A stretch of 64,000 nt of DNA, taken from NCBI RefSeq assembly GCF_963921235.1, contig NC_086110.1, positions 558,001 to 622,000 on the forward strand, in the 5' to 3' direction. How positions within the stretch are numbered: the stretch's first letter is position 1; each line of letters starts with the position of its first letter. Shown here one piece after another: positions 13,831 to 64,000 of this stretch. The position numbers were made by a program, and so were the translations under genes. The stretch comes from Mobula hypostoma. Lineage: Eukaryota. The notes beneath the pieces were generated by a model that saw only the letters and a list, made by a program, of their open reading frames with translations, did not search any database and was not told the origin of the DNA.

Positions 13831-13934
13831 TTAGAATGATTGCAAATAATTGACGATGAGCGCGATGCCCACTGTTATTACCAACAGACCCAGCAGAATT
13901 CGACACAGATTAATGCCTTGAGCCCACCGGGCTG
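13831..13934 (-). CDS. Gene A exon 4: transmembrane segment with Arg plus very short tail (activating type)
   Basis: tgtttcctag| acceptor, phase 1; AARWAQGINLCRILLGLLVITVGIALIVNYLQSF*; AAAAG|gtaaac donor 8 nt after the stop; linkage to the C1 exon is inferred from phase and position. Confidence 0.75.
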
Positions 13935-16346
13935 CTAGGAAACATATAAGTTGATAATTATTTTTTAGCAACAGGAAAATTAGGGGAAAAAACACAAAGA
14001 CAAGACAAGAATAGTGTTGTGGATAGAGGAGAAAGACGCATTTCTTTGTGGAGGGGGTAATGATAGTTCAGAAATCGGTAAAAACATAGAGAAGGCATCC
14101 AGAGGAGTCTGGAAGACAGAAAAAAAGCGAGGGGGTGAAAGGACGGTGGGGGGCGGCGGGGAGAGAGCAAGAGAGAGAGAGGGTGGAGATGCGATAACTT
14201 TTCACAGCCGACAAGTCGAATGAATTCAATTATTGTTTTAATGAATGTTATTTCACATATCTTATTATTGGTTTAACGCTATGTAAATATAATATACAAT
14301 ATTGACCAGAAAGTACTGAAATCTACAAATCAACGAACATTAATGAGGAAAGGGCTCTGGAAAGATCCAAATCATAAGTTTGTGTTCTGGTCATGTGCTC
14401 GCGGGGATGGAAACTGCTATTAGAGACGTAGAACATAGAATACCTGAAGCACAATACAGACCTTTCGGCCCACAATGCTGTTCCGAACATGTACGTACTT
14501 TAGAAATTACCTAGGGTTACCCATAGGCCTCTATTTTTCTAAACTCCATGTACCTGTCCAGGGGTCTCTTAAAAGACCCTATCTTTATTTTTTTTTTCCT
14601 TGCAATGTCATTTGCTGAAATGTTCAGTGAACAGTTTTTTCCCCAAAGCAAAGTCGGAGGACTGAATATGGACAGAATGGTTTTTCTGTTGATGACCTGC
14701 TAAACCTGAGACGACTTCCAGAGAAAATGTTCTTAATCATGTAAAAATGCAGCCTTGTTGAAGGAATAGCCTGTGATATGGTCGGCTGGGCCTTGTGTAG
14801 CCTGACCTGGCTGGCCAGGTCTTTGAACGTAGAAATTATTTCGGAAGCAAGTCTGTGGGAAAGAGCCTTAAAGTAACACAGTTTGTAGCCTTGGGCCAAC
14901 ATCCAATGAGAAGTCAGAACCAATCAGTAAGATGAACATTAGCTACTTGGCACTGCTAAAGGACAGTCCCAGGTTAGAAAAAGAAACCAAAAAAATTACA
15001 CGAGGAGTTAGTAGATCTTCAATGTAATCTTATTAGATTGCAGGGCAGAAGATTGTTGACGATGCGTATGTAGAAGTTTCAGCTGCTGTGTGAAAACGGG
15101 TTAAAGAAAAGAGTAAAGAATGAGAAGAAGCCCATGCAGCTTCTTCAAGAGTAAAGTGGAGTGATTGGGCGAACAGTGTAATGATTGAAGGGCCTCGATG
15201 AATGTCATTCAGAACTCAGCAGGAGAGAAAAAATAAACAACGCACATAACAGAAAGAGTCTACAGTAGACAGAGGAGCGACGGTGGCAACTTGCTGCTCT
15301 GAGAGGAATAACGTGCTGTCAGATCTGGAACAGGAGTAATGTAGGTCGTTATGCTGGGAACTGAACAGCATATAGTTCAGAAAATATAATCTGAGTCCGG
15401 TCTTGGATCAAAGTTCGGAGTTACAGAAAGATCAGAAGCTGTTGGAATTTCGGTTGATGAGAGGATGTCATCTTTTAAACTTTTTGAATGTTTATTTGTG
15501 CATGCTGAATAAATTCCTACATTACTTTGTTTAAAAGTACTAATATAACATGTTTCCTCAATTTTGCCTGATTGTAACATAATATTTTTGTAATCTTTAA
15601 AAATGAAAGCAGGTCATATTTTAAGATGATTTAAAGTGTGAATGATTTACACTATATGTTTCAAATGCTGCGTGAGTTCTTACTACATGTGAGTTGACTT
15701 GAGTGAAGGAGAGAAAATGCAGGAATGAGCGAGTACAAAGGCTATAATGCAACTGGTTAGTCGAAATATAAAAATTGTAGCATTATTTAAGCCCAGTTCA
15801 AATCTCAGTTGATTCCTTCATTATTAAGGCAGACATAACATGCAGAAACAAGAGAGCTGCGTCAAACTGTTGTGAGGTGTTCCTTTGCAAGCAGAAAACA
15901 GCACAAATCTAGTAGACTATAACATTAGTACTTTCAAATAGCCTCTGCCTTATTGTTCCCGGTCCAATCTACTCCGTTTGTGAGGAATTCGTAAGCATGA
16001 AACATAAATCTATGATGAGCACAGTCTGAACATAGAGAGACACCCACCACAGCAACCACATTTAGAAGAAGTATGAATTTCTTTAGACAGTGTTTAATGA
16101 ATCTGTGGAATTGATTGGAACCCAAGTCATTTGTATAGTTAAAGCGGATATTGGTAGGTTCTTGGTTAGTCAAGATGTCCAACGTTACGGGGAGAATGGG
16201 ATTGAGAAGGATAGTAAATCGGACTTGAAGGAATGACGCAGTAAATTCGCTGGGATGAATGGCCTAATTTGATCCTTTGTCGAAAGGTGTTACGGTCGAA
16301 TAAAATATAAATACATCTCAGGATGCCGTTCAGACTCTAAAAACCA

Positions 16347-16500
16347 CCAAAATCATGACTTCTATATGTTTCAATGGATGGCGTCTTCATGGATTCATGA
16401 AACAACTGGCAAATATAAGTGGGTCTGCTGACTATTGCATTGACGGAGAACGCAGCTGCAATGTAATATGATATCCCACTATTCTTCTGTGTAGCCAGTA
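16347..16500 (-). pseudogene. Relic of a second C1 domain (3' half) directly downstream of the gene A C1 exon
   Basis: QKNSGISYYIAAAFSV...YICQLFHESMKTPSIETYR aligns with QNKEGLYLVSSSLNV...YTCQVFHESIKAPASESYR; similarity also visible in the DNA. Confidence 0.65.
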
Positions 16501-19313
16501 ACTTACATTTCACTTTACCCTTGAATATGGTACCTTCCCCTCTGGATATGAGAAATTTATAAACACCAGACATAGTACATAGACGCATCTCAAGATGCGG
16601 TTGAGAATATAAGCCTCTTACCTAATCGGAATCTATATGATTCGGATGCTGGCGCCTTGATAGACTCATGAAACACCTGACAAGTATAAACAGACCAGGT
16701 TTCTATTACATTGAGGGAGCTTGAAACAAGATATAATCCCTCCTTGTTCTGCATTTGTGTGGTATGTATTCCAGAAGTGATTTCGATTTCATTTTTATAC
16801 CATATGAGCTCATAGTCCTTCGGGAAAAAAGCGGCAGTTGTGCACGTCAGCGCCACGGAAGGAGCGTTCACTTCGGTGATTTTCAACGGCGCCGGCGGAA
16901 CTGCAAGTGGTTAAAAAAAGAGAGATAAAATCTCTAAACGCGCATTTATCAGAGAAAATCCCAACTCAAGCAGGTTAAATCTTTTTGCATGACGTTTCAT
17001 GTGGCGATATGCATTTCCAGTAGTTTTTTTTTCATTGAATAGAACACTGACATTTCAGGTGAAGTTATCACGCAGAAATTACATGAAATCTTTTAGCGTT
17101 ACTCCATGATTCCGTGACCACTATTTATTTCTCTTTATCCACGTGCAAAAAGCTACAATAAGATTAGTTTGTTTTTGTTAGTTCTTCTAATCTTAAATTC
17201 ACTTTTTTATAAATTTTTGAACGTTCTGCACGTTCTTTAATGTGTAGTGGTGTAAACCATTTCGGCTTCGGTCTTCGTAATTCTTCTTACATTCTATATG
17301 TCGTAAATTGTTATACGCCAAAACAACAGAACCCCACTACCCATTGCACAAACAAATGAATTATTTCTGCAAATACTGAAGTCAGTTTGAATCCCACTAT
17401 ATCTTTCATCGACTCTTCATACCGATTGAAAATATATACACGTTTAGTCAGGTCAATTACCTTACAGCGTATTGCATTAAAATAATTTGATGGTATGGTC
17501 AACATATCTTAGCTAACGTATGGAATTAAATTTACCGTGTATTTTATTGTAATTGAGTTGTTATCAAGTGTTTTTTGTTGTATTGTATCGGATCCTGCGT
17601 AATAATTATTTCATTCTCCTTTATACTTGTGTACAGGAAATTACATGAAGCAATCTTGAACCTTGAATTTGGGACCTTCACTGCAGATACCAGTTCCAAA
17701 ATTCGCATTGGTATTGGTTCCACAGAACCGATCAGGTGGACGAGATTGAGTCAAAACAAAGCGGAAAGAGTTTAAAACAAAACGCAAGTTAACTATTTTC
17801 GGAGAAATTTAATGGAAGGAGATTTTACACGCAAGATGGTCTACACTATCTAGTATGAATACCGGCCAAAATCTTACAATGCAGAAGGACACCCGAGATT
17901 TTGATTACTGACACAGTGATGCAAAATGATGCAGTGAGTAATTCATAATACAATAGATTGTGTTACTATCAACAACAATTTAAGGAAAAAACGTTTAATT
18001 CAGAACATAATTCAGAAGCAACAGCAAAATCCAAGAAGTTGCGAGAACAAATCTCCTACTTGTACAGATTGCAAATCCTACACTAGGTTTTGTGAGAAAA
18101 ACAGATCAATCTGTAAGAAGAAATAAAAATGCCACTTTTAAATCAGGAAAAAAACGTTGTGTGAACTGTTCTGTAACTCGCTTAACATTATGTTAGTATT
18201 TAGAGAGAATGGAATAGAGATACCTGTTTGAATGTAATGGGGGTGAAAATCAGTATATATGGAGAGGATATGGAACTTGTGCGTGTTGCAATGATTAGGT
18301 GAAGTTCTGTATAATCGACAGACGTTGAAATGCCAACTAATCAAATTCCTTTAAGGACAAAAATTAAATCTCTCAGTATTCATCACGCATACAATTGGTT
18401 ATCCAACAATGCTCTAATCTGTGTCGCATTAAGACTCCTTATTCCAACATTTTTTACCCGGAATAAACCTGTTTACAATACGAAAAACATTGGACATATT
18501 TAACAGTGCGATGAGCTCTATTTTCTACATTAAACTAGACCAAGACTTTAATAGGAATTGGGAGTTCCATAGGGAGGGTTGACATAAACAGAACCCTGGT
18601 ACCGTACGTGCCTAATCCCTTAAAGTCATGACACAGATGGGCAATCACAGAAGATGATTGGCGAAGAAGGCGATTTGGCATTCCTGCCTGTGCTGGTAAG
18701 TAATTGGGACGTCAGGCTGAAATTGCACAAGTTGTTGGCGAGAACATACTTGAGGTAGTGTCCGTGGTTCTCTTGGCCTAGCCACAGCATAAATGTGATT
18801 AATCTGGTATGAATGCGTGCAGCACTGGGTCTGGAGGGTTTCATTTACATGGAGAATCTGCGACTCTTTGTCTGTAGAGAAGGAGGTCGAAGCGTGATCT
18901 GATAGATGCTTATAAAGTTATAAGGACCAATATAACGTGGATAGTCAGAGTCTTCTTCCCAGATTCTCGGTGTCTCCAATTGGAGGGATGGGTTTAAAAT
19001 TAATGGGCGTAGGTTTAAATTGAACCTAAAAGGTACATTTTTCAACACACTTGGCAGTAGGTAAATGTAAAGACACGCACAAGAAGCTAAGGATGCGGGA
19101 TAAAACGAAAATGCAAAAAAAAACACAATCATTCAGACATGCACATGATTTGAAAGCAATGTGTTCAGAGATATCGGGGTTTGTTCGGCATGTCAGATTT
19201 GGGTTGAGAAATGTCCGTCTCGGTTATATAAATCTATGACTCGTTTGAAAAAATTCAAACTACCTTCGTGCATTTTAATAACCCTACAGTTGCAGCGGTT
19301 AAAATGTTTCCTG
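16480..19313. repeat. Segmental duplication, copy 1 (V-C1 intron plus C1 exon)
   Basis: Colinear similarity to about 61100-64000 (offset about 44.6 kb), including shared old LINE fragments; similarity runs to the window end. Confidence 0.95.
16622..16900 (-). CDS. Gene A exon 3: C1-set Ig domain
   Basis: ttgcag| acceptor and G|gtaag donor; 279 nt, phase 1-1; VALTCTTAAFFP, LIWYKN, GLYLVSSSL and YTCQVFHES C1-set motifs. Confidence 0.92.
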
Positions 19314-30956: not shown

Positions 30957-31144
30957 TGTAGCGATGTGCTACACACAGCGCTAGAATAACCACACGGAGT
31001 CGATGAGTTGGAGTTGCGATGAAAGAGGTTTATTCAAACTTCGCGGCCCGCTTTAAAGCCTTCCCTTTCCCGCCCTTTTTGCTGCCGGGCTGTGCGCGCT
31101 GTTTCGTGAGCCGGTTCGTGGGTGTCAGAAAGTGGGTCGCCACA
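30957..31144 (-). repeat. 3' LTR of the CsRn1-like element
   Basis: 188 bp, TGTAGC...GCCACA; closely similar to 34951-35146. Confidence 0.95.
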
Positions 31145-31352
31145 TAACCCCCCCCCCCCCAGAACCGCCGATACCTCCCCCAATGTCCACAGTCTGGATC
31201 GGCCTCTGTTTGGGAGGTCTGCCCCTGCGCCGCGGTGCCTGAGCCTGGACCGGTTGCGCCAAGTCCACATGGGCCGGTTTGAGTCGGTCCACCGTGAAAA
31301 CCTCCTCTCTCCCCCCCAATGTCCAGCACGAACATGGACCCGTTGTTCATGA

Positions 31353-34299
31353 TCACCTTAAACGGCCCCTCGTAGGGCCGCTGTGGCGGTGCCCGGTGTC
31401 CGCCCCGTCGTACAAAAAGAAACTTACAGTTCTGCAGGTCTTTGGGTACGCAGGTCGGGCTCTGTCCGTGCTGTGAAGTGGGTATGGGGGCCAGGTTACC
31501 GAGCCTCTCCCGTAGTCTGTCCAGGACTGCTGTGGGTTCTTCCTCTTGCCCCTTGGGGCTGGCATGAACTCTCCTGGGACGACCAGGGGCGCGCCGTACA
31601 CCAACTCGGCCGACGAGGTGTGTAGATCCTCTTTGGGCGCCGTGCGGATTTCGAGCAGGACCCAGGGAAGTTCGTCCACCCAGTTAGGCCCCTCCAGGCG
31701 GGCCATGAGAGCCGATGTCAGGTGACGGTGGAAGCGCTCCACTAGTCCGTTCGACTGTGGGTGGTAGGCAGTTGTGTGGTGTAGCTGTGTTCCTAAAAGT
31801 CTGGCCATAGCCGACCACAGGCTGGAGGTCAACTGGGCGCCCCTGTCGGAGGTAATGTGGGCCGGTACCCCAAAGCGTGCTACCCAGGTTGCGATCAGTG
31901 CTCGGGCGCAGGATTCGGAGGTGGTGTCGCTGAGCGGGACTGCCTCTGGCCATCTGGTGAACCGGTCTATCATAGTTAGGAGGTACCGCACTTCTCGTGA
32001 CACTGGCAGGGGCCGCACGATATCCACATGGATGTGGTCGAACCTCCGGCGGGTGGGTTCGAACCGCTGCGGCGGAGCCTTGGTGTGCCGCTGCACCTTG
32101 GCCGTTTGGCACTGCATACACGTTTTGGCCCATTCACTGACCTGTTTACGAAGTCCATGCCACACGAACCTGTTGGAGACCAGCCGGACAGTTGTCCTGA
32201 TGGAAGGGTGTGCTAAGTTGTGAATGGATTCGAACACCCGCCGGCGCCAGGCTGCTGGGACGACGGGGCGGGGTTGGCCATTAGCTACGTCACATAGTAG
32301 GGTCCTCTCACCTGGGCCTACGGGGAGGGCTTAGAGCTGCAAACCGGAGACTGCAGTCCTGTAACTGGGGATCTCAGCGTCTGCCTGCTGTGCCTCTGCC
32401 AGCGCTGCATAGTCCACCCCCTGGGACAGGGCTTGTATGGTAGGTCTGGAAAGTGCGTCTGCCACGACATTGTTCTTTCCAGAGACATGCCGGATGTCCG
32501 TCGTGTACTCGGAGATGTAGGACAGATGTCGCTGCTGGCGGGACGACCGGGGGTCGGACACCTTAGTGAACGCAAAGGTAAGCGGTTTGTGGTCGTTGAA
32601 CGCGGTGAAGGGCCTACCTTCTAAGAAGTACCTGAAATGCCGGATTGCCAGGTACAGTGCCAATAGCTTCCGGTCGAAAGTACTGTATTTGAGTTCGGTG
32701 GTCGTAGGTGTTTGCTGAAAAACGCGAGGGGTTGCCAGCGACCCTCGATGAGTTGTTCCAGCACTCCACCGACTGCTGTGTTGGATGCGTCCACCGTGAG
32801 GGCAGTAGGAACGTCCATTCTGGGATGCACTAGCATCGCGGCGTTCGCCAAGGCTTCTTTGGTTTTAACGAAAGCGGTTGCGGCTTCTTCGTTCCAGGTA
32901 ATGTCCTTGCCCTTACCCAACATTAGAGTGAACAAGGGGCGCATGGTTCGGGCTGCTGAGGGGAGGAAACGGTGGTAGAAATTCACCATACCCACGAATT
33001 CCTGCAAGCCTTTGATTGTGTTAGGTCGGGGGAAGTGGCGGACCGCGTCTACCTTGGCGGGCAGCGGGGTCGCCCCGTCTTTAGTAATCCTGTGGCCCAG
33101 GAAGTCGATGGTGTCGAGTCCGAACTGGCATTTGGCTGGATTGATTGTAAGGCCGAATTCACTCAGGCGGGAGTAGAGCTGGCGGAGGTGGGACAGATGC
33201 TCCTGCCGACTACTGCTGGCTATGAGGATGTCGTCCAAATAGATGAATGCAAAGTCCAGGTCGCGTCCCACCGCGTCCATTAGCCGCTGGAAAGTCTGTG
33301 CGGCGTTCTTTAGACCAAACGGCATTCGGAGGAATTCGAAAAGTCCGAACGGGGTGATAAGTGCTGTTTTGGGGATGTCGTCCGGATGTACAGGGATTTG
33401 ATGGTATCCCCGGACGAGGTCTACCTTGGAAAAGATCCTTGCGCCGTGTAGGTTTGCTGCGAAGTCTTGAATGTGCGGCACAGGGTAGCGGTCTGGCGTT
33501 GTAGCCTCGTTCAGTCTACGGTAGTCACCGCATGGTCTCCAGCCCCCCGTTGCCTTGGGCACCATGTGAAGGGGGGAGGCCCATGGGCTGTCGGACCGTC
33601 GTATGATCCCTAATTCCTCCATCTTCTTGAACTCCTCCTTCGCCAGTCGGAGCTTGTCCGGGGGAAGCCTTCGAGCACGGGCGTGGAGGGGTGGTCCCTG
33701 GGTCGGGATGTGGTGCTGTACTCCGTGTCTGGGCATGGCTGCCGTGAACTGCGGTGTCAGTACTGATGGGAAATCCGCCAGGACCCTGGTGAATTCATCG
33801 TCGGACAGCGTGATGGAGTCCAGGTGTGGGGCTGGCACTGTGCTTCACCCAGGGAGAACGTTTGAAAAGTCTTGGCGTGGACTAATCACTTCCCTTGCAA
33901 GTCGACCAGCAGGCTGTGGGCTCGTAGAAAATCTGCCCCCAGCAGTGGTTGGGCCACGGTGGCCAGTGTGAAGTCCCACGTGAACCGGCTGGAGCTGAAC
34001 TGTAGCCGCACCGTGCGGGTGCCGTAGGTTCGTATTGTGCTGCCATTAGCGGCCCTCAGGGTGGGTCCCGGTTCTCTGTTGCGGGTGTCGTAACTCGTTG
34101 GAGGTAAGACGCTGATCTCCGCACCGGTGTCGACCAAAAGCGGCGTCCCGACTGCTTGTCCCAGACGTACAGGAGGCTGTCCTGATGGCCAGCCGCCGTA
34201 GCGATCGGCAGCGGCTGGGCCTTGGCGTTTCCCGGGAATTTGCAGGGCGGTCTGCAGCGGTGGGCCTCCGTGCCCCACCGCTGGTGGTAGAAACACCAT
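31353..34299 (-). pseudogene. pol: Gypsy pol split over several frames (protease, RT, RNase H, integrase)
   Basis: LLVDTGAEISV protease; MPFGLKNA and YLDD RT; DASN and DHKPL RNase H; HNLAH..CMQC and D,D35E integrase (VDIV, SDRG, VERF). Confidence 0.92.
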
Positions 34300-34910
34300 T
34301 GTACGTTGGGCTCCTCACTCCCGTCGCCGGGTTTTGTAGGCTCTGCTGCCGGGCCTGGTCTGGTCTTTCGTTGGGCACGCGGCTTGGTGATCTGTGTGAC
34401 GGATGCCCCTCTCTCTTTCCTGGCAATCCACAGCACATCTGCTCGGGCCGCCACCTCCCGGGGTTTGCTGAAATCTGCGTTGGACAGCAGCAGGCATACT
34501 TCCTCGGGCAGTTGCTCTAGGAACGCCTGCTCAAACATGAGGCAGGGTTTGTGTCCTTCAGCCAGGGCCAGCATCTCGTTCATTAATGCTGACGGCGGCC
34601 TGTCTCCCAAACCATCCAGGTGCATTAAGCGGCGTGCTCGTTCGCGCCGTGAAAGTCCGAAAGTCCTTATGAGCAGGGTTTTGAATGTTGTGTATTTGCC
34701 GTCCTCCGGGGGCGACTGTATAAACTCCTCAACTTGTGCAGCAGTCTCCTGGTCGAGGGAGCTCAGCACGTAGTAGTAGCGAGTGGATTCCGAGGTTATC
34801 TGCCGAATGTGGAATTGTGCTTCTGCTTGTTCGAACCATAAATGGCTTCGCAGCGTCCAGAAGCTTGGCAGTTTTAACGAAACTGCGTGAACAGATGCAG
34901 CGTCGGTCAT
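34056..34910 (-). pseudogene. gag: Gypsy gag with CHCC knuckle
   Basis: MTDAASVHAVSLKLPSFW...WFEQAEAQF; C-x2-H-x9-C-x3-C motif (CFYHQRWGTEAHRCRPPC). Confidence 0.85.
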
Positions 34911-34950
34911 CTCTGGTCCAAATACCGTTTGGGCCGTCGGGGTCACCAAT

Positions 34951-35146
34951 TGTAGCGATGTGCTACACACAGCGCTAGAATAACCACACGGAGTCGGTGA
35001 GTTGGAGTTGCAATGAAAGAGGTTTATTCAAACTTCGCGGCCCGCTTTTAAAGCCTTCCCGTTCCCGCCCTTTTTGCCGCCGGCCCTCTGCCTGCGCGCG
35101 CTTTTTCGTGAGCCGGTTCGTGGGTGTCAGAAAGTGGGTCGCCACA
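34951..35146 (-). repeat. 5' LTR of the CsRn1-like element
   Basis: 196 bp; followed on minus by AT and a tRNA-Trp-type PBS. Confidence 0.95.
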
Positions 35147-44120: not shown

Positions 44121-45529
44121 AATGAACAAATAAGAGGAAAGGAAGAGATGAGGAGCGCAGTGATCGTGAATAGCCAAAGCTATTTTTCCAGGGCTGATAT
44201 GGCTAACACGATGAGGCATAGTTTTAAGGTGCTTGGAAATAGGTACCGTGGTGGATGCCCAGGGTAAGTTTTCACAGAAAGTGGTGTGGGTGGAATGCAC
44301 TGCCGGCCACGGTGATGGACGCGAATGCAATAGGACATTTTAACATCATTTTAGTTAGGTGCATGAAGCTTAGAAAGATAGCCAGGGAAGTTCTTGGCAG
44401 TTTCTAGAGTAGGTTTTATGGTCGGCACAACATTGTGGGCCTAAAGTCCTGTAATATGCTGTAAGTTTCTATATTCTCTGTTTCTAAATTCACCAGATAC
44501 GTTAGTTCGGCCAAGACTGATGAGCCAAAGCCTTTTTAAACACTGGCACAATCAATATAATGTCTACTCCTCTTGCACTTGCCTTATTTCTATTGGCTCT
44601 TGCTCATAATATGCTTACAGCCCGAATTATGTACACAAATGTGCATGCAATATGAAAATTCTGAAATTATTTGAAGAAATAACAACGCTATGGGATAAGA
44701 CATTACTGCTGGACGTTTGGCATTTCAAAATCTGCTTGCTAAGTTGCACAAATCATGACTATTAGCAGACCGTAGATAATCAATGGGCAAATTTACAAAT
44801 GCTGGCGATATTGATAAATGGAGGGTGTGAAATGTGCTCAAATTCGGAAAGAAAATATAGAGACTCCTGCAAAACTAGATGTTTCAAATTATTCTCTACA
44901 GTATATGCATACAGCGAGTGAATAAAACATTGTCGACCAGTTATTTTATTTCCTTTTCCCTCGAGAAACAGAAGAATAATTTGAACATCTGCTGATGACA
45001 TGGGTGAACAGTGGCCAATAGAGTAAGCTAGACGAGCCGAATGACTCGGTTCTGTGCAGCAGAGTGTTCACACTGTAATATAAGGAGCTTAGTCAATGGG
45101 ATATAACGACGCAGTAGATTAGTTTACATCAACTCCTGTAATACTTTTGGCAATATTTCAAATTGTACTCCCTTCCGGTATGACAAAGCACAAAGAAAAA
45201 CCGTGTTAGCAAACTGGATCTAAAATTGTTTTCTTGATAGGGGACAAACTTGACAACTGGATGATTTTTATTCTTTCGGGATGTTTGCTATTGACAAGTT
45301 GCGATTGCAACATGGATGCCTAATTATATAACTCGTGGAGAGGTAGTTAGCCATTAAATTCTGACATCTACATTTTGGGTTTATTCCTCTTGTATGAAAA
45401 ATAGAGCAAATGAAAGTTGGAAGGTTGGTCTTATGTTGCAAATCCATACCACGCTAGAACATGTTGAAACTCTAGGACAGCGTGGATAAGAAGGCACTTG
45501 ATAGGTTTGGCTCATAGGACATGGTACTG

Positions 45530-48500
45530 AGATTAGACCAGAAGACCATAAGATATAGGAGCAGATATAGGTCATTAGGGTCATCCAGTCTGCTCCGTCA
45601 TTAAATCATAGACTGATGTAATTCGTCCAGTCATCTCCACTCTCCTGTTTTCACCCCATACCCTTTGATGACTTGGCTAATCAAAGGCCTATCAATCTTT
45701 GCCTTAAATACAGCCAATGACCTGGCTTCCACAGCCGATTATGGCAACAAATTCCATATTTACCACCTTCTGACTAAAGTAATTTCTCCGCAGCTCAGTT
45801 CTAAAAGGACGTCCTTCAATCCTGAAGTCATACCCTCTTGTCCTAGAGTCCTCTACCATTGGAAATAAGTTTGCCATATCTAATCCGTTCAGGCGTTTTA
45901 ACATTCGGAATGTTTCTGTGAGATGCCCCCTCATTCTCCTGAACTCCAGGGAATCCAGCCCTAGAGCTGCCAAAGTTTCCTCATACGGTAAACCTTTCAT
46001 TCCCAGAATCAATGTCGTGAATCTTCTCTGAACCCTCTTCAATGTCAGCATATCCTTTCTAAAATAATCAGCCCAAAAACTGCACAGAATAATACAAGTG
46101 TGGTCTCACGAGTGCATTTTAGAGCCTCAACATCGCGTCCCTGCTCTTATATTCGATACCTCCAGATAGCAATGCCAACGTTGCATTTGCCTTCTTCACA
46201 ACTGACTCGACCTGGAGGTTAACGTTTAGGGTACCTTGCACAAGAGCTCCCAACTCCCTTTGCATCTCTGTATCTTGAAATCTTTACCTCTCTTAATAAT
46301 AGACAACGCGTTTATTTCTTCCAGCAAAGTGCATGACCATACACTTTCCAACATTGTATTTCATTTGTCAGTTCTTTGTTCATTCCTCTAAACTATCTAA
46401 GTCTCTCTGCAGCTCTCTATTTCTTCAAGACTACTCTCTCCTCCACCTACATTTGTTTCATCGGCAAATTTAGCAACAAATCCATTAATACCGCATTCGA
46501 AATCATTGACGAACATCTTAAAAAGCAGCCGTCCCAATACCGACCACCGTAGAACTCCACTGGTACCTGGCTGCCAGCCAGAATAGGATCTCTTTATTCC
46601 CACTCTCTGTTTTCTGCCGACCGGCCAATGCTCCCCCGACGCTATTAACTTCCCTGTAATTCCATGGGCTCTTATCTTGCTGAACAGCCTCACGTGTGGC
46701 ACCTTGTCAAAGGCCTTCTGAAAATCCAAGTAAATCACGTCTACTGCATCTCCTTTGTCTACCCTGCTTGTAATGTACTCAAATAAATGCAGCTGGTTTG
46801 TTGGGTATATTTTTCCTTTTAGCAAACCATGCTGGCTTTGCTTTATATTGTCATGTGCCTCCAGGTGCTGTGTAATCTCATTCCTAACAATTAATTACAA
46901 CAACTTTCCAACCACTGATATCAGGCTAGCAGGTCTATAGTTTCCTTTATACTGCTTCCCATCCTTCTTAAATAGCAGAGTAACATTTGCAATTTTCTGG
47001 TGCACTGCCAGAATCTACCAATTCTTGAAAGATCATTGCTAATGCCTCCACAAACTCTCCAGCTACTTCTTTCAGAACCCAAGGATGCACTCCATCGGGG
47101 TCAGGAGGTCTATCCACCCACAGACCATTACGCATCCTGAGCACCTTCTCATTCGTAATTTTCACTGCACAGACTTCAGTTCCCTGACACTCCTGAATGT
47201 CCGTTTTACTGCAGATGTCTTCCACTTCGGAGACTGATGCAAAATGTGCATTCAGTTCCTCTGTCATCTCTGCATCTCTGATAACAATATCTCCAGCATC
47301 ATTTTATTTTGGTCTCATATCTACCCTCGACTCTCTTTTATTCTTTATATACTTAAAAAAGCTCTTAGTATTTTCTTTAATATTAGTAGCCAGTTTTCTC
47401 TCAGAATTCATGTTTTCCTTCCTAACGACGTTCTTTGTTTACTTCTGCAAGTTTTTAAGAGCTCCCCAATCCTGTATTTTCCCACTAGCGCTGGCTTCCT
47501 TGTATACACTCTCTTTAGCTTTTATTTTGGCTCTGACTGCACTTGTCAGCTAGGGTAGTGTCCTCCTTCCCTTGAAAATTTCTTATTTGGAATGTATATG
47601 TTTTGCACTTCCCTCATTTTCCTCAGATACTCCAACCATTGCTCATCTGTTGTCTTTCCTGCAATTGTCTGTTTCCAGTTAACTTCGGCCAGAACCCCTC
47701 TCATGCCATTGTAATTTCCTTTATTCCACTGAAATACCGACACATTGGATTTCATTTTTCCCTTCAAATTTCAATGTGAACTTCATCATATTGCGATCAC
47801 TTTTCCCTGAGGATTCCTTCACCGTAAGCTCGCTTATCATGTCCGCACCATTGCACAATATCTAGTTCAGCGCAGCCGATCACCTAGTGGGCTCACCGAC
47901 AAGCTATTCTAAAAAGCCATTCTTTAGACATTCTACAGATTCTCTGTCTTGATGTCCAGAGCTGACCTAGTTTCCCAAACCACTTTCATCTTCAAAACCC
48001 TAACGATTATCAACACATTGCCTTTCAGACACGTCTTTTCCAACTCCTGCCGTATTTTGTTATCCATATCCCCACCATAAGACAGAGGAGCAGAATTAGA
48101 CCATAAAGCCCATCGAGTCTGCCCTGCCATTCCAGCATAGCTAATCCCGGATCACACTAAACCGCAATCATCTGCATTCTCACCATATCCATTGTAGCCC
48201 TGTCTGGTCAGGAAACGGTTAACATCCGCCTTAAATGTTTGTCCGAACTTGGCCTCCACCCCATTCTGTGGCAGAGCATTCCACAGATTTACTACTCTCT
48301 GGCTAAAATAAAAATCCGCCTTACCTCTGTTCTATAGTGTCGTCCCTTATCTTTGAGGCTGTGCCCTCTTGTTCCGGACACCCCCACCATAGGAAACATC
48401 CTCTCCATATTACCACACATTCGGTAGATTGCAATGAAATCACCCAACGCCGGCTCCCTCCCCCGCCTCCCGCCACACACACACATTCTTCCAAATTCCA

Positions 48501-49603: not shown

Positions 49604-49771
49604 TCAATGGCTATATGGTGCTCTTTTCGTTTCCAGATGTCTCGCCTCTTCCTTTATCTTTATTCCTGCATACTCGGTCCCATGAGTCTTCTGCACTCTT
49701 CTTGCGTTTTTCTGAGAAGCGGCGACATCCACACATGCATACATCAATTTATCCTCAGTTCCTTGTATGAT
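49604..49771 (-). CDS. Gene B: terminal cytoplasmic exon with ITIM (LMYACV) and ITSM (TEYAGI)
   Basis: tgtttccatag| acceptor after an 88-nt intron; phase 0; IIQGTEDKLMYACVDVAASQKNARRVQKTHGTEYAGIKIKEEARHLETKRAPYSH*; TGA at 49604-49606. Confidence 0.8.
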   Translation of the reverse strand: MIQGTEDKLMYACVDVAASQKNARRVQKTHGTEYAGIKIKEEARHLETKRAPYSH

Positions 49772-49859
49772 CTATGGAAACAATAATTAGAGATAAAGAG
49801 CTGCTGATCCAGTACTTTGAAAAACTGATTTGTGCAGTGAACTCTCTCTTTTATCTTAC

Positions 49860-49967
49860 CAGTGCATTAGTGCGTTCGGCTTCATATCTGACTTTCTTGT
49901 TTTTATTATCCCTTCTAAAATTTAGATCTGCATAGGAAGGACTGCCGATATCCTGGCTTTCTGAAGC
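49860..49967 (-). CDS. Gene B: cytoplasmic exon 2 with YADL motif
   Basis: ttgtttttctcag| acceptor and CTG|gtaag donor; 108 nt, phase 0-0; ASESQDIGSPSYADLNFRRDNKNKKVRYEAERTNAL. Confidence 0.8.
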
Positions 49968-50039: not shown

Positions 50040-50960
50040 AATCGTAAACAACAGGAATTCTGCAGATGCTGGAAATTCAAGCAACACACATCAAAGTTGC
50101 TGGTGAACGCAGCAGGCCAAGCAGCATCTATAGGAAGAGGCGCAGTCGACGTTTCAGGCCGAGACCCTTCGTCAGGACTAACTGAAGGAAGAGTGAGTAA
50201 GGGATTTGAAAGCTGGAGGGGGAGGGGGAGATGCAGAATGATAGGAGAAGACAGGAGGGGGAGGGATGGAGCCGAGAGCTGGACAGGTGATAGGCAGAAG
50301 GGGATACGAGAGGAGCATGGGACAGGAGGTGCGGGAAGAAAGACGGGGGGGGGGGTGACCCAGAGGATGGGCAAGAGGTATATTCAGAGGGACAGAGGGA
50401 GAAAAAGGAGAGTGAGAGAAAGAATGTGTGCATAAAAAAGAGTAACAGATGGGGTACGAGGGGGAGGTGGGGCCTAGCGGAAGTTAGAGAAGTCAATGTT
50501 CATGCCATCAGGTTGGAGGCTACCCATACGGAATATAAGGTGTTGTTCCTTCAAACTGAGTGTGGCTTCATCTTTACAGTAGAGGAGGCCGTAGATAGAC
50601 ATGTCAGAATGGGAATGGAATGTGGAATTAAAATGTGTGGCCACTGGGAGATCCTGCTTTCTCTGGCGGACAGAGCGTAGATGTTCAGCAAAGCGGTCTC
50701 CCAGTCTGCGTCGGGTCTCGCCAATATATAGAAGGCCACATCGGGAGCACCGGACGCAGTATATCACCCCAGTCGACTCACAGGTGAAGTGATGCCTCAC
50801 CTGGAAGGACTGTTTGGGGCCCTGAATGGTGGTAAGGGAGGAAGTGTAAGGGCATGTGTAGCACTTGTTCCGCTTACACGGATAAGTGCCAGGAGGGAGA
50901 TCAGTGGGGAGGGATGGGGGGGGGGGGGGACGAATGGACAAGGGAGTTGTGTAGGGAGCG
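50040..50960 (-). mobile_element. Penelope-like 3' fragment with a well-preserved GIY-YIG endonuclease
   Basis: ORF 50474-50941: GVIYCVRCSRCGLLYIGETRRRLGDRFAEHL...; terminal repeat follows. Confidence 0.88.
50144..50179 (-). ncRNA. Minimal hammerhead ribozyme motif in the Penelope terminal repeat
   Basis: AGTC-CTGACGA-AGGGTCTCGGCCT-GAAAC-GTC-GACT: intact core, stem I AGTC/GACT, short stem II, palindromic ACGT stem III. Confidence 0.65.
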
Positions 50961-51110
50961 ATCCTACCTCCTTTGGGTCCTAGTGCATTGTATCCTTGTA
51001 AAACGCATCATTACTTGACAGATATTGGAAGATATAAATGTATACGGAAAATAAACAGTCCGTCTGATTTTCCTAAACAGTTGGTGAGCTCGTGTATGTG
51101 CCTATATATA

Positions 51111-52370
51111 CAGTGGCATGCAAATGTTTGGGCATCCCTATTCAAAATTTCTGTTACTGTGAATAAGCGAGTAAAAGATGACCTGATTTCGAAAAGACAT
51201 AAAGTTAAAGATGACACATTTCTTTAATATTTTAAGCATGATTACTTTCTTATCTCCATCTTTTACAGAATGAAAATAACAAAAAAAAACAAAGGAAAAG
51301 GGCCCGAAGCAAAAGTTTGGGCCCCCAGCCTGTCAGTACTTAGTACCAACCACTTTGGCAGGTATCTAGCTCTGTGAGATTCTTGGGCCGTCTTGCATGC
51401 ACTGCTCTTTTGAATTTCGATGATGTTTATGTCAGGGGACTGTGAGGGCCATGACGAGATCCTCAGCTGCGCCTCTTGAGGTATTCTATTGAGGACTTTC
51501 AAGTGTGTTTAGGATCATTATCCTGTTGTAGAAGTCATCCTCTTTCCATCTTCAGCTTTTTTAAAGACTGTGTGATGTTTGCTTCCGGAATTTGCTGGTA
51601 TGTAATTGAATTCATTCCTCCCTCTACCAGTGTAATGCTCTCCGTGCCGTTGGCTGCAACACAAGCTCAAATCATGATGAATCCACCCCGTGCTTAACCG
51701 TTGGAGAGATGTTTTTTTTCCAGGAAATTCTTCACCCTTTTTTTTTTACTCCAAATATACCTTTGCTTATTGCGGCGAAAAAGTTTTATTTTAACTTCAT
51801 CAGTCCAGAGGACTTGTTTTCAAAACGCATCAGGCTAGTTTAGATGTTACTTTGCAAACGTCTGATGCTGACTTTTAATGGTGAGGACGCAGGAAACATT
51901 TTCTTCTGATAACTCCTCCATGAAGGTTATATTTGTGCAGATATCGCTGCACAGTAGAACAGTGAACCACCACAGAGTCTGCTAAATCTTCCTGAACGTC
52001 TTTTGAAGTCAAATGTGAGTGTTGATTGCCTTTCTAGCAAACCTACGAGCAGTTCTCTCGGAAAGTTTTCTTGGTCTTCCAGACCTTAATTTGACCTCCA
52101 CTGTACCTGTTAACTGTCATTTCCTAATTACATTACAAGCTGAGGAAACAGCTACCCGAAAACGCTTCGCTATCTTCCTATAGCCTTCCCTTCTCCAGCT
52201 TTGTGGGCGTTATTTAATTTAATTTTCAGAGTGCTAGGTCGCTGCTTATAGGAGCCCATGGATGCTTTTGTAGCGACAGGGATTGAGTAGTCAGGGCATT
52301 TATGAAGCTTTGCAATTTGTATCACCTTGCGTTTGCTAACGATGATTGTGACAAGCCATAGCCCTAACAG
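51111..52370 (-). mobile_element. Tc1-family DNA transposon, decayed
   Basis: TA|CAGTGGCATGCAAA terminus; SSWPSQSPDINIIE motif from the DD34E region on minus. Confidence 0.85.
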
Positions 52371-52490
52371 CCAGTGCACCCCGGTCAAAATTGCTGTTAT
52401 GTGAATAGCAGAGCGAGTAATAGATTACCTGGCTTCCATAAGGGAATAAAATTAAAGATGACACATTTCTTTAATATTTTAAGCAAGATT

Positions 52491-55120
52491 ACATAGAACA
52501 TATAACATAGAATACCACAGACCCTTCGGCCCACAATGTTGTGCCGATCCTCAAACCCTGCCTCCCATATAACCCCCCAACTTAAATTCCTCCATATACC
52601 TGTCTAGTAGTCTCTTAAACTTCACGAGTGTATTTGCCCCCACCACTGACTCAGGGAGTGCATTCCACGCACCAACCACTCGGTGAATAAAAAACCTTCC
52701 TCTAATACCCCCCTTGAACTTCCCGCCCCTTAACTTAAAGCCATGTCCTCATGTATTGAGCAGTGGTGCCCTGGGGAAGAGGCGCTAGCTGTCCACTCTA
52801 TCTATTCCTCTTATTATCTTGTACACCTCTATCATGTCTCCTCTCATCCTCCTTCTCTGCAAAGAGTAAAGTCCTAGCTCCCTCAATCTCTGATCATAAT
52901 GCATACTCTGTAAAACAGGCAGCATCCTGGTAATTCTCCTCTGCACCCTTTCCAATGCTTCCACATCCTTCCTATAGTGAGGCGACCAGAATTGGACACA
53001 GTACTCCAAGTGTGGCCTAACCAGAGTTTTATAGAGCTGCATCATTACATCGCGACTCTTAAACTCTATCCCTCGACTTATGAAAGCTAACACTCCATAA
53101 GCTTTCTTAACTATCCTATCCACCTGTGAGGCAACTTTCAGGAATCTGTGGACATGTGCCCCAGATCTCTCTGCTCCCCCACACTACCATTCATCCTGCC
53201 ACTTACTTTGTACTCTGCATTGGAGTTTATCTTTCCAAAATGTACCACCTCACACTTCTACGGGGTGAATTCCATCTGCTACTTCTCAGCCCACTTCTGC
53301 ATCATGTCAATGTCTGTCTGCAATCTTCGACAATCCTCTACACTATCTACAACACCACCAACCTTTGTGTCGTCTGCAAACTTGCCAACCCACCCTTTCA
53401 ACCCCACATCCAGTTCGTTAATAAAAATCACGAAAAGTACAGATCCAAGAACAGATCCTTGTGGGACACCACTAGTCACAATCCTCCAATCTGAATGCAC
53501 TCCCTCCACCACGACCCTCTACCCTCTGCAGGCAAGCAAATTCTGAATCCACCTGGCCAAACTTCCCTGGATCCCATTCCTTCTGACTTTCTGAAGGTAC
53601 CGTGTGGTACCTTGTCAAATGCCTTACTAAAATCCATAAAGATCAGATCCACTGCACTTCCTTCATCTATATGCCTGGTCACCTCCTCAAAGAACATTAT
53701 CAGGCTTGTTAAACACGATCTGCCCTTCACAACGCAATGCTGACTGTCCCTGATCAGACCATGATTCTCTAAATGCCCATAGACCCTATCTCGAAGAATC
53801 TTTTCCAACAGCTTTCCCACAACAGACGCAAGGCTCACTGGTCTATAATTACCCGGACTATCCCTACTACCTTTTTTGAACAAGGGGACGATATTCGCCT
53901 CCCTCCAATCCTCTGGTACCATTCCTGTGGACAACGAGGACATAAAGATCCTAGCCTGAGACTTAGTAATCTCTTCCCTTGTCTCACGGAGCAGCCTGGG
54001 GGAATATTCCGTCAGGCACCGGGGACCTATCCGTCCTAATGTATTTTAACAGTTCCAACACATCCTCTCCCTTAATATTAGCATGCTCAAGAACATCAAC
54101 CTCACTCATATTGTCCTCTCCATCATCAAATTCCCTCTCATTGGTGAATACCGAAGAGAAGTATTCATTGCGGACCTCGCTCACTTCCAGAGCCTCCAGG
54201 CACATCTTCGCACCTTTATCTCTAATCAGTCCTACATTCACTCATGTCATCCTTTTGTTCTTCACATAATTGAAGAATGTCTTGGGGTTTTCCTTTACCT
54301 TACTCGCCAAGGCCTTCTCATGCCCCCTTCTTGCTCTTCGCAGCCCCTTCCTAAACTCCTTTCTTGCTTCCCTATATTCCTCAATAGACCCATCTGATCC
54401 TTGCTTCCTAAACCTCATGTATGCTGCCTTCTTCCACCTGACTAGATATTCCACCTCACTTGTGACCCATGGTTACTTCACCCTACCATTCTTTATCTTC
54501 CTCACCGGGACAAGTTTATCCCTTACGTCTTCCAAGAGATATCTAAACATCGACCACATGTCCATGGTACATTTCCCTTCAAAAACATCTTCCCAATTCA
54601 CACCCGCAGGTTCTAGCCTACTAGCCTCATAATTTGCCCTTCCCCAATTAAAAAAAAACTGTCCTCTCTGATTCTATCCTTTTGTATGATAATGCTAAAG
54701 GCCAGGGAGTGGTCGTCACTGTCCCCCAAGTGCTCACCCACTGAGAGTTCTGTGACCTGATCCTGTTCATTTCCTAGTAATAGATTTAGTATGGCATTTC
54801 CCATAGTCGTCGTGTCCACATACTGTGACAGGAATTCGTCCTGGACACATTTACCAAACTCTGCCCCATATAAACCCTTGAACCTGATCAGGTGCCAATC
54901 AATATTAGGGAAGTTAAAGTCACCCATGACAACAACACTGATATATTTGCACCTTTCCAAAATCCGCCACCCAATCTGCTCCTCTGTGTCTCTGCTGCTA
55001 CCAGGGGGCCTATACAATACCCCCAATAGAGTAACTGCTTCCTTCCTGTTCCTGACTTCCACCCATACTGACTCAAAAGAAGATCCTGCTTCATTACCCA
55101 TCTTTGCTGTAACTGTAATA
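52491..55120 (-). mobile_element. CR1-type LINE ORF2 (APE plus RT), frameshifted and 5'-truncated
   Basis: VVMGDFNFPNIDW APE; DFSKAFDKVPH, GVPQGSVLG and FADD RT; CATAGAA tail; inserted in the Tc1 TIR with flanking attac repeats. Confidence 0.92.
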
Positions 55121-57847: not shown

Positions 57848-57867
57848 TGTGTGTGTGTGTGTGTGTG
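57848..57867. repeat. (GT)n microsatellite
   Basis: direct reading. Confidence 0.9.
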
Positions 57868-59383: not shown

Positions 59384-59430
59384 CTGATTTTCCTGGTAGC
59401 GACTTAAGTTCTCATCATTTTCCGCTGCGA
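59384..59430 (-). CDS. Gene B: cytoplasmic exon 1
   Basis: tttttatttcctctag| acceptor and CAG|gtaaga donor; 47 nt, phase 1-0; VAAENDENLSRYQENQ. Confidence 0.75.
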
Positions 59431-59913: not shown

Positions 59914-60024
59914 CTTCAGTCCTGTCTACTCTGAAACGCCTGATAAGTAACAACAGCGCGAGGATAATGACTCCGCAGGCTGCAAGTGCACCCGTCAGGA
60001 TGAAGATGAACTGGTGTCTGCTTT
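59914..60024 (-). CDS. Gene B: uncharged transmembrane exon
   Basis: cacacctcag| acceptor and G|gtaag donor; 111 nt, phase 1-1; ESRHQFIFILTGALAACGVIILALLLLIRRFRVDRTE, with a basic stop-transfer cluster. Confidence 0.85.
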
Positions 60025-61099: not shown

Positions 61100-64000
61100 G
61101 ATATCTCACTCTTCGTTGCATAGCCAGTGCCTTACATTTCCCTTTCCCCCTTTGAATATGTCCCCTTCCTCTCTGTTTGTGATGAATTGATAAATGCCAG
61201 ACATAAAACATGCGGTTGAGAATATAAGCCTCTTACCTAGTCCGATTCTATATGACTCGGAGGCTGGCGCCTTCATAGATTCATGAAACACATGGCAAGT
61301 ATAAACAGACCAGCTTTCTATTACATTAAGGGAGCTTGAAACTAGATATAATCCCTCCTTGTTCTGCATTTGTGTGGTATGTATTCCAGAAGTGATTTCG
61401 ACTTCATTTTTATACCATATGAGCTCATAGCCCTTCGGAAAAAAAGCAGCAGTTGTGCACGTCAGAGCCACGGAAGGAACGTTCACTTCGGTGATTTTCA
61501 ACGGCGCCGGCGGAACTGCAAATGGTTGAAAAAGAGGTAAAATCTCTAAACGCGCCTTTATCAGAGAAAATAATCGCTGACAGAAAAATATACTTCACAA
61601 CTTGGAGTGTTAATTTGAATTTAACTTGAAAACATTCATCCCAAGTCAAGCAGTTTACGTATTTTAGCATGACGTTTTATGTGGCGATATACATTTTCAT
61701 TAGTTTTTATTTTTTCATTGAATAGAACACTGAAGTTTCAGGTGAAGGTATCAAGGATAAATTAAATAAAAGCTTTCTGCGTTACCCCATGACTCCGTGA
61801 CCACTATTTATTTATCTTTATTCCACATGCAAAAAGCTACAATAAGATTAGTTTGTTTCTGTTAGTTTGTCTAATCTTAAATTCACATTTTATAAATTAT
61901 TGAATTTACATTGTGAGAACTTTCTGCTCGTTCTTTAATGTGTTGTGCTGTAAAACATTTCGGCTTAGGTCTTCGTAATTCTTCTAATGTTCCATATGTC
62001 GTAATTGTTATACGTCAAAACAACAGAACCCCACTACCAATTGCACAAACAAATGAATTATTTCTGGAAATACTGAATTCAGTTTGAATCCCATTATATT
62101 TTTCATCGACTTTTCATACCGATTGAAAATATATGCAGGTTTAGTCACGTCAATAACCTTACAACGTGTTACATCGAAAAAATAATTTGATGGTAGAGCA
62201 AACTTCTCTTAGCTAACGTATTTTATAGTAATTGTGTTGTTATCAAGTGTTTATTTGCATTCTATCAGATCCTGCGTAATAATTATTTCATTCTCCTTTA
62301 TAATTGGGTACAGGAATTACATGAAGCAATCTTAAATCTTGAATTTGGGACCTTCACTGCAGATACCAGTTCCACATTTCGGATTAGTATTGGTTCCATA
62401 GAACCAATCAGGTGGGCGAGATTGAGTCAAAACAAAGCGAGGAAAGTTGATAACAAAACGCAGGTTAACTATTTTTGGAGAAACTTAAGGGAAGGAGGCT
62501 TTGGAAGCAAGGTGGGCTACACTATCTAGTATGATTAACGGCCAAAATCTTACAATGCAGAAGGACGTCCGAGATTTTGTTTAATGACATAATGATGCAA
62601 AATGATGCGGTGAGTAATTCATAATACAATAGTTGTGTTACTATCAAAAACCATTTAAGGAAAACAGCGTTCAATTAAGAATGTGATTCAGCAGCGACAG
62701 AATAACCCAAGAAGCTGATGGAACAAATCTCCTTCTTGTACACAGTGTAAATCCTACACTAGGTTTAATGAGAAAACCAGATCAATTTATAAACAGAAAT
62801 AAAAATGCCACTTTTAAATAAGGAAAAAGTGTTGTATCAACTGTTCCGTAACTGGCTTAATAATATGTTACTATTTAGAGGAAACGGAATAAAGGTATCT
62901 ATCTGAATGGACTGGAGGTGGAAATCAGTATATATGGAGAGGATATGGAACTTGTGCTTGTTGCAATGATTGGCTGAAAGTAGTTCGGCACAACATCATT
63001 CTGTATAATCGACAGGCATTGAAATGCTAACTGATCAGATTCCTATAAGGACAATAATTAAATATCTCAGAATTCATCACACATGCGATTGGTTATCCAA
63101 CAACGCTCTAATCTGTGTTGCATTAAGACTCCTTATTCCAACATGTGTACCCGGAACAAACCTGTTTGAAATACGAGAATCATCGGGAAATATTTAACAG
63201 TGCGATGTGTTCTATTTTCTACATTAAATTCGACCAAGGCTTAAACAGTAATTGGGAGTTCCATAGGGAGGGTTGACGTAAACAGAACCCTAGTGCCGCA
63301 CGTGGCTAATCCCTTAAGGTAGTGACACAGATGGGTAATGTGGTGAAGAAGACGATTTGAAATTCCTGCCTGCTGGTCAACAATTCGGACGTCAGAAATT
63401 GCACAAGTCGTTGCTAAGAACACACTAGAGATATTTTCCGCGGTTCCCTTGGCCTAGCCACAGCACAGATGTCATTAATCTGGTATGAATGCGTGCAACA
63501 CTGGGTCTGGAGGGTTTCATTTACATGGAGAATCTACGACTCTTGGTCTGCAGAGAAGGAGGTCGAAGGGTGATCTGATAGATGCTTATAAAGTTATAAG
63601 GACCTAGATAACATGGGTATTCAGAGTCTTCTTCCCAGATTCTCGGTGTCTGCAACTGGAGAGATAGACTTAAAATGAATGGCGTAGGTTTAAATTGAAC
63701 TTAAAACGTACCTTTTTCTACTCACTTGGCAGTTGGTACATGTAAAGGCATGCACAAGGAAGCTGAGGAAGCGTGATAAATGAAAATGCCCCCCCCCCCC
63801 AAAAAAAAAACATTCAGGCATGCGAATGAATTGCAAAAAAATCTGTTCAGGGATATTGTGGTTTGTTCGGCATTTCAGATTTGGGTTGAGAAGTGTCCGT
63901 CTTGGTTGTATACACCTACGAGTCGTGTGAAAAAAAAAATCAAATGATTTTTGTGCATTTTAATAATCTTTGAATTGCAGCGGTTAAAAAGGTTTCCTGC
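61100..64000. repeat. Segmental duplication, copy 2
   Basis: Colinear with about 16480-19313; the last bases (ttgcagcggttaaaa..gtttcctg) match 19290-19313. Confidence 0.95.
61237..61515 (-). CDS. Gene B: C1-set Ig domain exon (paralog of 16622-16900)
   Basis: ttgcag| acceptor and G|gtaag donor; 279 nt; 85 of 93 residues identical to the gene A C1 by manual alignment. Confidence 0.92.

Follow-up and report, generated by a model that had tools for sequence, protein, structure and literature searches.

The window analysed here is a 64,000-nucleotide (nt) stretch of the devil ray Mobula hypostoma (contig NC_086110.1, positions 558,001 to 622,000, forward strand), and it contains two look-alike immunoglobulin-superfamily (IgSF) receptor genes, gene A (LOC134356409) and gene B (LOC134356411). 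They are probably a locally duplicated pair in an old cartilaginous-fish family of non-rearranging, antigen-receptor-shaped receptors, in which gene B would encode the inhibitory and gene A the activating member. An earlier note, made from the letters of the window alone, had proposed a paired activating/inhibitory receptor system of a cartilaginous fish. The analysis confirms the paired gene models and both supports and extends their interpretation as paired receptors: the architecture is real and is found beyond this locus, with the functions being those that the motifs suggest.

Gene A encodes 252 amino acids (aa) in the order leader, V domain with a J-like strand (VJ), C1-set domain, transmembrane (TM) segment bearing an Arg, and 6-aa tail. 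Its exons are as follows.

22937-22883, minus strand: gene A exon 1, the ATG and a split leader with a phase-1 end (residues 1-18 of P0084).
22638-22318, minus strand: gene A exon 2, the V domain and J-like G strand (..KGNGTNVIVH; Pfam V-set, 5.3e-6).
16900-16622, minus strand: gene A exon 3, the C1-set domain (Pfam C1-set, 2.4e-13).
13934-13831, minus strand: gene A exon 4, the TM exon including the stop (the C-terminus of P0084 and P0085).

When the exons are joined, the product is identical at every letter to P0084 (XP_062923413.1, LOC134356409 isoform X1, 252 aa), which bears out the leader-VJ-C1-TM(Arg) structure given in the earlier note. All junctions, read on the minus strand, are AG/GT and in phase 1, and the open reading frame is intact across the four exons with canonical splice sites and has neither a stop nor a frameshift. 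The V exon runs uninterrupted from the V domain through the J-like strand, so that J is germline-joined without a recombination signal sequence (RSS) gap. In exon 4, a short stalk and Cys-Arg precede a 16-residue hydrophobic core, which is followed by six further residues and the stop; the six-residue tail is counted from the end of the core and carries no tyrosine motif. The acceptor of this exon has a strong polypyrimidine tract and is of the NAGNAG type (tag|cag, 13931-13937, minus strand), which explains the NCBI isoforms X1 and X2, the variant P0085 being one Ala shorter. Gene A occupies positions 571,831-580,937 of OY992605.1. The NCBI models of both genes are predictions, not cDNAs.

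Gene B encodes 362 aa in the order leader, VJ, C1, uncharged TM segment and 116-aa tail. Its exons 1 and 2 (leader and VJ) lie outside the window, 5.0-5.6 kb past its end, and the remaining exons are the following.

61515-61237, minus strand: gene B exon 3, the C1-set domain (Pfam C1-set, 9.3e-13; residues 126-218 of P0104).
60024-59914, minus strand: gene B exon 4, the uncharged TM segment and RRFRVDRTE (phase 1 to 1).
59430-59384, minus strand: gene B exon 5, a 47-nt mini-exon encoding VAAENDENLSRYQENQ (phase 1 to 0).
49967-49860, minus strand: gene B exon 6, a tail segment with SPSYADLNF.
49771-49604, minus strand: gene B exon 7, the tail with LMYACV and TEYAGI, and the stop.

The spliced product is identical to P0104 (XP_062923415.1, LOC134356411 isoform X1, 362 aa), and P0083 is isoform X2, in which the C1 exon is skipped. 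The gene spans positions 607,604-627,616 of OY992605.1, and its junctions within the window are AG...GT with compatible phases; the claim of phase-compatible GT-AG junctions held for every exon of both genes. The C1 exon, the uncharged TM segment and the 116-aa tail with tyrosine motifs that the earlier note had described were all recovered, but the stretch that it took for a single tail exon (49604-49967) is interrupted by an 88-nt intron and comprises two. It had also missed the mini-exon, which supplies the necessary phase shift: a direct splice of the TM exon to position 49967 leads to a premature stop and was rejected, hence the 47-nt exon is required. The tail carries YADL, an immunoreceptor tyrosine-based inhibitory motif (ITIM), LMYACV, and an immunoreceptor tyrosine-based switch motif (ITSM), TEYAGI, with the ITIM and ITSM tyrosines spaced by 23 residues.

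Long interspersed nuclear element (LINE)-type reverse-transcriptase/endonuclease fragments, some in inverted pairs, are found on both strands at 50474-55101 and 45500-47300, where they occupy the 9.4-kb intron 5 of gene B and the intergenic region.

The two genes lie on the same strand, 27 kb apart. Their C1 exons differ at 18 of 279 nt (the proportions of differing synonymous and non-synonymous sites, pS and pN, are 0.16 and 0.038, with pN/pS 0.24) and agree in 84 of 92 full codons, or in 85 of 93 if the split codon is included, as the earlier note had counted. The V exons differ at only 6 of 321 nt, five of these differences being non-synonymous, and the introns diverge by 9-19%. The paralogous block begins some 14 kb upstream of the leader, extends roughly 180 nt beyond the C1 donor and ends at 16433 on the A side and at 61064 on the B side. 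Downstream of this point, again in accord with the earlier note, the likeness of the genes ceases, and an alignment of the TM exons and their surroundings found no similarity (z = 0.26). Two features define the block and its end.

36259-16433, minus strand: the A-side paralogous block (upstream region, leader, V, intron and C1), delimited by self-comparison and by comparison with locus L004 of M. birostris.
16360-16448, minus strand: a relic in intron 3 of gene A, 89 nt long and derived from a C1-exon 3' end, which translates to ..YICQLFHESMKTPSIETYR.

The breakpoint (A 16433-16440) recurs against three inhibitory genes, namely gene B, its M. birostris orthologue and the next paralogue. The relic is 75-80% identical to the C1-exon 3' ends of three inhibitory genes, and it coincides exactly with the end of the A-B homology. 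Because the homology stops about 180 nt past the C1 exon, at a piece of another C1 exon, gene A looks recombinant, and the relic is probably the scar of the event that built it. The simplest reading is that a B-like 5' block, comprising everything from the upstream region through the C1 exon and about 180 nt of the following intron, was fused to the 3' portion of an older gene of the activating type. From this older gene would come the final 89 nt of a C1 exon, which survive as the intronic relic, as well as the following intron and the Arg-bearing TM exon, and the V exons of the two genes would have been homogenised after the recombination.

Two repeats lie in the same region. A Gypsy-like long terminal repeat (LTR) retrotransposon at 30957-35151 (minus strand, between genes B and A) interrupts the A-side block; it has LTRs of about 200 bp that are 92% identical, and DUF7041 gag-like, reverse transcriptase (RT)-RNase H and integrase frames. 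It is lineage-specific and is missing in M. birostris from the paralogous region upstream of the gene B orthologue (L004 2254/2258). A tandem array at 37645-38550 consists of 24.5 copies of a 37-nt G+C-rich unit with 92% matches and gives rise to long spurious open reading frames on the plus strand.

Comparison with M. birostris places the duplication in time. Locus L004, which carries the gene for P0001, aligns colinearly with gene B (93-96% identity) and is its orthologue. In each 300-column window of the alignment, gene A is separated from the two B orthologues by about the same distance, hence the duplication is older than the species split. The introns diverge by about 12% between A and B, whereas those of the B orthologues differ by about 5%, which makes the duplicate two to three times older than the split. 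A recent, post-speciation conversion of the whole block between A and B was considered and rejected, since it is at odds with the equal distances in each window. The V and leader exons alone are unusually similar between A and B. The V exon is star-like, with 6 differences between A and B of M. hypostoma, 9 between A and B of M. birostris and 7 between the two B genes, whereas intron 1, between leader and V, retains the old divergence (21, 22 and 7 differences for the same pairs). This contrast indicates that short-tract conversion homogenised the V exon, and probably the leader, at about the time when the two species separated.

Substitutions were polarised with the next paralogue as the outgroup. 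In the C1 exon, the A branch carries three non-synonymous (N) and four synonymous (S) changes and one ambiguous S, and the B stem 2 N and 4 S; these counts, albeit small, indicate purifying selection. Since its homogenisation, the V exon has accumulated 10 N and 1 S over the three branches, against a neutral expectation of 3.4 : 1. We do not claim positive selection on V, as this excess, though suggestive, is not significant (hand-calculated binomial P of about 0.25). The gene A changes in V include Pro30 to Leu and Gly79-Asp80 to Trp-Gly. Such an altered framework could mean a lower affinity, or it could be a mark of decay. Many activating partners of paired receptors show lower affinity.

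The family to which the pair belongs was retrieved by an exhaustive HMMER search with the V exon and by two word-indexed protein searches. The HMMER search, a check proposed in the earlier note, returned predicted proteins of cartilaginous fish only, and the same was true of all family searches. Members are found in rays (Mobula, Hemitrygon and Narcine), in sharks (Heterodontus, Scyliorhinus, Carcharodon, Cetorhinus, Mustelus, Heptranchias, Chiloscyllium, Hemiscyllium, Rhincodon, Stegostoma and Pristiophorus) and in a chimaera (Callorhinchus). They share the order leader, VJ, C1, TM and a tail in which as many as four tyrosine motifs occur (..SYAxLNF.., ..TVYAQT.., ..LTYASLD.. and ..EYAEIKI..), and rays and sharks alike have kept the inhibitory motifs of the tail. 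The NCBI names are inconsistent (SIRP-alpha-like, SIRP-beta-1-like, tapasin-related-like, NCR3LG1-like, CD276 homologue, Ig lambda-like, or uncharacterised), so that one family is filed under at least six unrelated automatic RefSeq names.

At least four family genes stand in tandem on OY992605.1, an 80.6-Mb chromosome. By accession order two more follow gene B, the first of them at 647,774-659,910. Skipping of the C1 exon, which joins VJ directly to TM, is predicted for gene B, P0002, P0005 and P0007 in Mobula, Heterodontus and Scyliorhinus. The resulting isoforms remain in frame because the exons concerned are all in phase 1, and they have a single-V layout like that of NKp30 or PD-1. One predicted protein, P0008 of Scyliorhinus canicula (XP_038661939.1, 450 aa), contains the TM-plus-tail module twice in tandem; this is either a real internal duplication or the result of two adjacent genes having been merged by the predictor.

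The Arg-bearing TM segment of gene A also has counterparts in the family. A local scan of all retrieved proteins revealed a second TM/tail type, in which an Arg directly precedes about 19 hydrophobic residues that are followed by Asp/Glu-His and a short tail without an ITIM. It is present in P0016 (Chiloscyllium), P0012 (Carcharodon), P0009 and P0056, and at least two of these four proteins are from sharks. The gene A segment is 44% identical to that of P0016 over 25 residues, and a profile built from the four proteins ranked gene A first among the other family C-termini and above all of 500 shuffled sequences. A word-based search of 5.8 billion proteins with the gene A TM region, which needs exact 5-residue words, found M. 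hypostoma only; we regard this outcome as a false negative because the local scan did find related TM segments.

The Arg-TM members form no common group in an ectodomain tree built by maximum likelihood. Gene A pairs with gene B (support 98/77), P0012 with P0028 (100/94), P0009 with P0014 (100/99) and, weakly, P0016 with P0003 (82/39), while P0056 is unplaced. Three of the four other Arg-TM proteins hence adjoin an inhibitory member, the support being strong for two of them and weak for the third. This scattering of Arg-TM members beside inhibitory relatives indicates that the pairing of the two signalling types is old and family-wide and has been renewed repeatedly by recombination.

An AlphaFold2 model computed with the family alignment has a mean predicted local distance difference test score (pLDDT) of 88.3 and consists of a V domain, a C1 domain and a TM helix. 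Foldseek matched it in Swiss-Prot to PD-L1, CD276, B7-H6, butyrophilins, Skint, T-cell receptor (TCR)-beta, TAPBPR and immunoglobulin (Ig) light chains at 14-21% identity, and in the PDB best to light chains and TCR-beta. A phmmer search of solved proteins with the V exon gave TCR V-alpha (E = 0.013) ahead of NKp30 (E = 0.066, confined to residues 66-105, the F-G strands). Such fold and sequence matches suggest an antigen-receptor-shaped ectodomain with no specific orthologue among characterised proteins. Look-ups in the ESM Atlas led from the tail to generic signalling adaptors and from the V domain to generic V-set clusters. A ranking of PDB chains by V and C1 profiles, intended to place NKp30, SIRP, TCR and tapasin, was discarded, as multi-domain proteins (titin, pIgR and antibody heavy chains) dominated it.

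The motifs of the tails and TM segments suggest how the two receptors might work; every signalling step, the adaptor, the ligand and the cell type are inferred. Upon ligand binding to the gene B product, Src-family kinases would phosphorylate YADL, the ITIM and the ITSM, and the spacing of 23 residues between the latter two would be suitable for phosphatases of the SHP-1/SHP-2 type with their tandem SH2 domains, resulting in inhibition. A similar spacing is found in PD-1 and SIRP-alpha. In the gene A product, the Arg at the outer TM boundary would pair with the Asp of an adaptor dimer of the FcR-gamma, DAP12 or CD3-zeta type carrying immunoreceptor tyrosine-based activation motifs (ITAMs), and signalling would proceed only via this adaptor. 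The N-L-x-R context of the Arg presumably resembles that of the FcR-gamma-coupled receptors GPVI and LILRA. One and the same ligand could then damp a cell via B or trigger it via A.

Several observations weigh against this assignment. RNA mapping, another check proposed in the earlier note, gave no gene A transcript: in three small same-species RNA runs, whose contigs can show presence but not absence and were mapped over 11500-17400, no contig fell on the gene A TM exon, and sampled words of that exon were absent from all three. Contigs on the gene A C1 exon came from one run only and, at 92-95% identity, are those of paralogues. No A-type protein is found among the M. birostris annotations, although in a sister-species DNA run the region specific to gene A, its TM exon included, is present at single-copy depth and about 96% identity, which means conservation at a roughly neutral level. 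The V domain of gene A has lost Pro30, a Pro in most members, and the nearly invariant Asp80 of the DxGxYxC motif, and its Pfam V-set score is 28.6 bits versus 32.4 for gene B. The likeness of its TM segment to the Arg-TM class is modest (7.5 bits versus 6.2 bits for one inhibitory member), and it has an Asn where the shark members carry Asp/Glu. As for gene B, its first tyrosine motif, PSYADL, is not a canonical ITIM.

The missing transcript and annotation, the lower V-set score and the fact that all two to four A-branch changes in V are non-synonymous and hit the conserved Pro30 and Asp80 speak for a different explanation, in which gene A is a decaying by-product of recombination that splices into an open 34-codon terminal exon and drifts towards a pseudogene, so that only the inhibitory genes matter. 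We consider this rather unlikely. The duplicate is two to three times older than the species split and yet has acquired no stop or frameshift, its four exons keep an intact frame and canonical splice sites, and the 3 N : 4 S of its C1 branch, small as these counts are, lie below the neutral ratio of about 3.4 : 1. Its TM exon fits a class that is conserved in sharks, and NCBI models two isoforms via the NAGNAG acceptor.

It is very unlikely that the Arg-TM exon is an annotation artefact, that is, the first open hydrophobic frame behind a good acceptor, with the real 3' end of gene A being elsewhere or nonexistent. The lack of support in the three RNA runs and the confinement of the word-based matches to M. 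hypostoma would fit such an artefact. However, related TM segments with the same Arg position, the Asp/Glu-His end and a short tail are present in four family proteins, and the exon is in phase 1 like the Ig exons of gene A, has a strong polypyrimidine acceptor and is single-copy sequence. In the same region, the segments 12879-13075 and 14455-14651 show an extreme contig depth (tens of thousands) in both RNA and DNA runs and are high-copy repeats.

Another explanation, which we regard as unlikely, is that the family is already known, either as the shark NCR3/NKp30 family linked to the major histocompatibility complex (MHC; Kinlein et al. 2021) or as true SIRP orthologues. The GNGT J-like strand, the match of the F-G region to NKp30 and the V-TM layout of the C1-skipped isoforms speak for the former, and the SIRP-alpha-like and SIRP-beta-1-like names of several members for the latter. 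The four-tyrosine tail of the shark members, which we take to resemble the SIRP-alpha tail, also counts in its favour. However, the match to TCR V-alpha is no poorer than that to NKp30, there is a single C1 domain where NKp30 has none and SIRP two, and the fold search, with its B7, butyrophilin, TCR-beta, light-chain and TAPBPR matches, points to no specific orthologue. Two labels of the earlier note are weakly founded: its 'NKp30-like ectodomain' comes down to a marginal F-G-strand match, and its 'SIRP-like signalling' to a motif resemblance that the automatic NCBI names echo.

The family shares with NKp30 (NCR3) a non-rearranging VJ-type V domain with a GNGT G strand and, in the activating form, an Arg-bearing TM segment with a short tail; the V-TM layout is shared by the C1-skipped isoforms only. 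It differs in that the main isoforms carry a conserved C1-set domain, which NKp30 lacks, and in that most members are inhibitory. The A/B locus lies at 0.56-0.66 Mb of OY992605.1. The MHC-linked shark NCR3 family of Kinlein et al. (2021) is cited in the paper on the elasmobranch genes UrIg and UrIg2 (PMC12227049). Neither an NCR3/NKp30 name nor a nurse shark source occurred among the matches of the two family-wide protein searches, even though close orectolobiform relatives were present in them. We therefore think that the present family is probably a different one from the shark NCR3 family. A name for it was not found in the papers that could be read.

With SIRP of mammals and birds the family shares a V domain that contains a J-like G strand and precedes C1-set sequence, clustered genes, an inhibitory member with several tyrosine motifs of the kind that recruits SHP-1/2, and an activating member whose ectodomain is near-identical and whose very short tail follows a TM segment with a basic residue. 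It differs in having one C1 domain instead of two (the second C1-like piece of gene A is the 89-nt relic), in the position of its Arg at the outer TM end and in its confinement to cartilaginous fish in all searches. SIRP-beta couples to DAP12 through a Lys in the middle of its TM segment. SIRP was not among the top 30 Swiss-Prot fold matches.

Like other paired families (KIR, LILR/PIR, CD300, teleost NITR, skate MDIR and hagfish APAR), the present family couples look-alike ectodomains to opposite signalling modules, and it shares with them clustered genes, recombination and gene conversion, and a fast-evolving ligand-binding domain. NITR and APAR are without C1, and KIR and LILR use C2/I-type domains; we know of no other paired IgSF family that combines a VJ domain with a single C1-set domain. 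A V(J)-C1 ectodomain is also that of TCR and Ig light chains, and gene A is laid out like a TCR chain, its VJ-C1 part being followed by a TM segment with a basic residue and by a tail only a few residues long. However, in TCR and Ig genes V and J are separated by RSSs, whereas here they are germline-joined and long inhibitory tails occur, and the identity is 17-22%.

UrIg and UrIg2 (Flajnik et al. 2023 and 2025) are likewise elasmobranch and non-rearranging, with a split leader and a single-exon VJ followed by C1-set domains. UrIg is secreted and has three C domains, UrIg2 forms disulfide-linked homodimers with nine to eleven, and both are discussed as relatives of the antigen-receptor precursor (PMC12227049). 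They have neither ITIM/ITSM tails nor an activating partner, whereas the present family has one C1 domain and a TM segment. A two-domain VJ-C1 ancestor is postulated in a scheme of the Flajnik group, the named examples of which, UrIg and UrIg2, carry more C domains (PMC12227049, Fig. 2 legend). An improbable further idea is that the family described here is a membrane-bound survivor of a two-domain VJ-C1 lineage near the non-rearranging TCR/Ig precursor. If it were true, the activating form would already have had the layout of a TCR chain, namely VJ-C1, a basic TM residue and a minimal tail dependent on an ITAM adaptor, and the inhibitory form would show that such VJ-C1 chains acted as checkpoint receptors, too.

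Pathogen pressure has been met time and again with paired receptors, and the families studied so far are mostly those of mammals, birds and teleosts. In summary, genes A and B would provide a cartilaginous-fish example in which a VJ and C1 ectodomain is combined with both signalling types. The visible recombination scar would show how an activating member is made, with the subsequent homogenisation limited to the exon of the ligand-binding domain. The pair offers testable receptors for the regulation of innate lymphoid or myeloid cells in elasmobranchs, and the family is a candidate outgroup for the roles that V-C1 chains may have had before RAG-mediated rearrangement.

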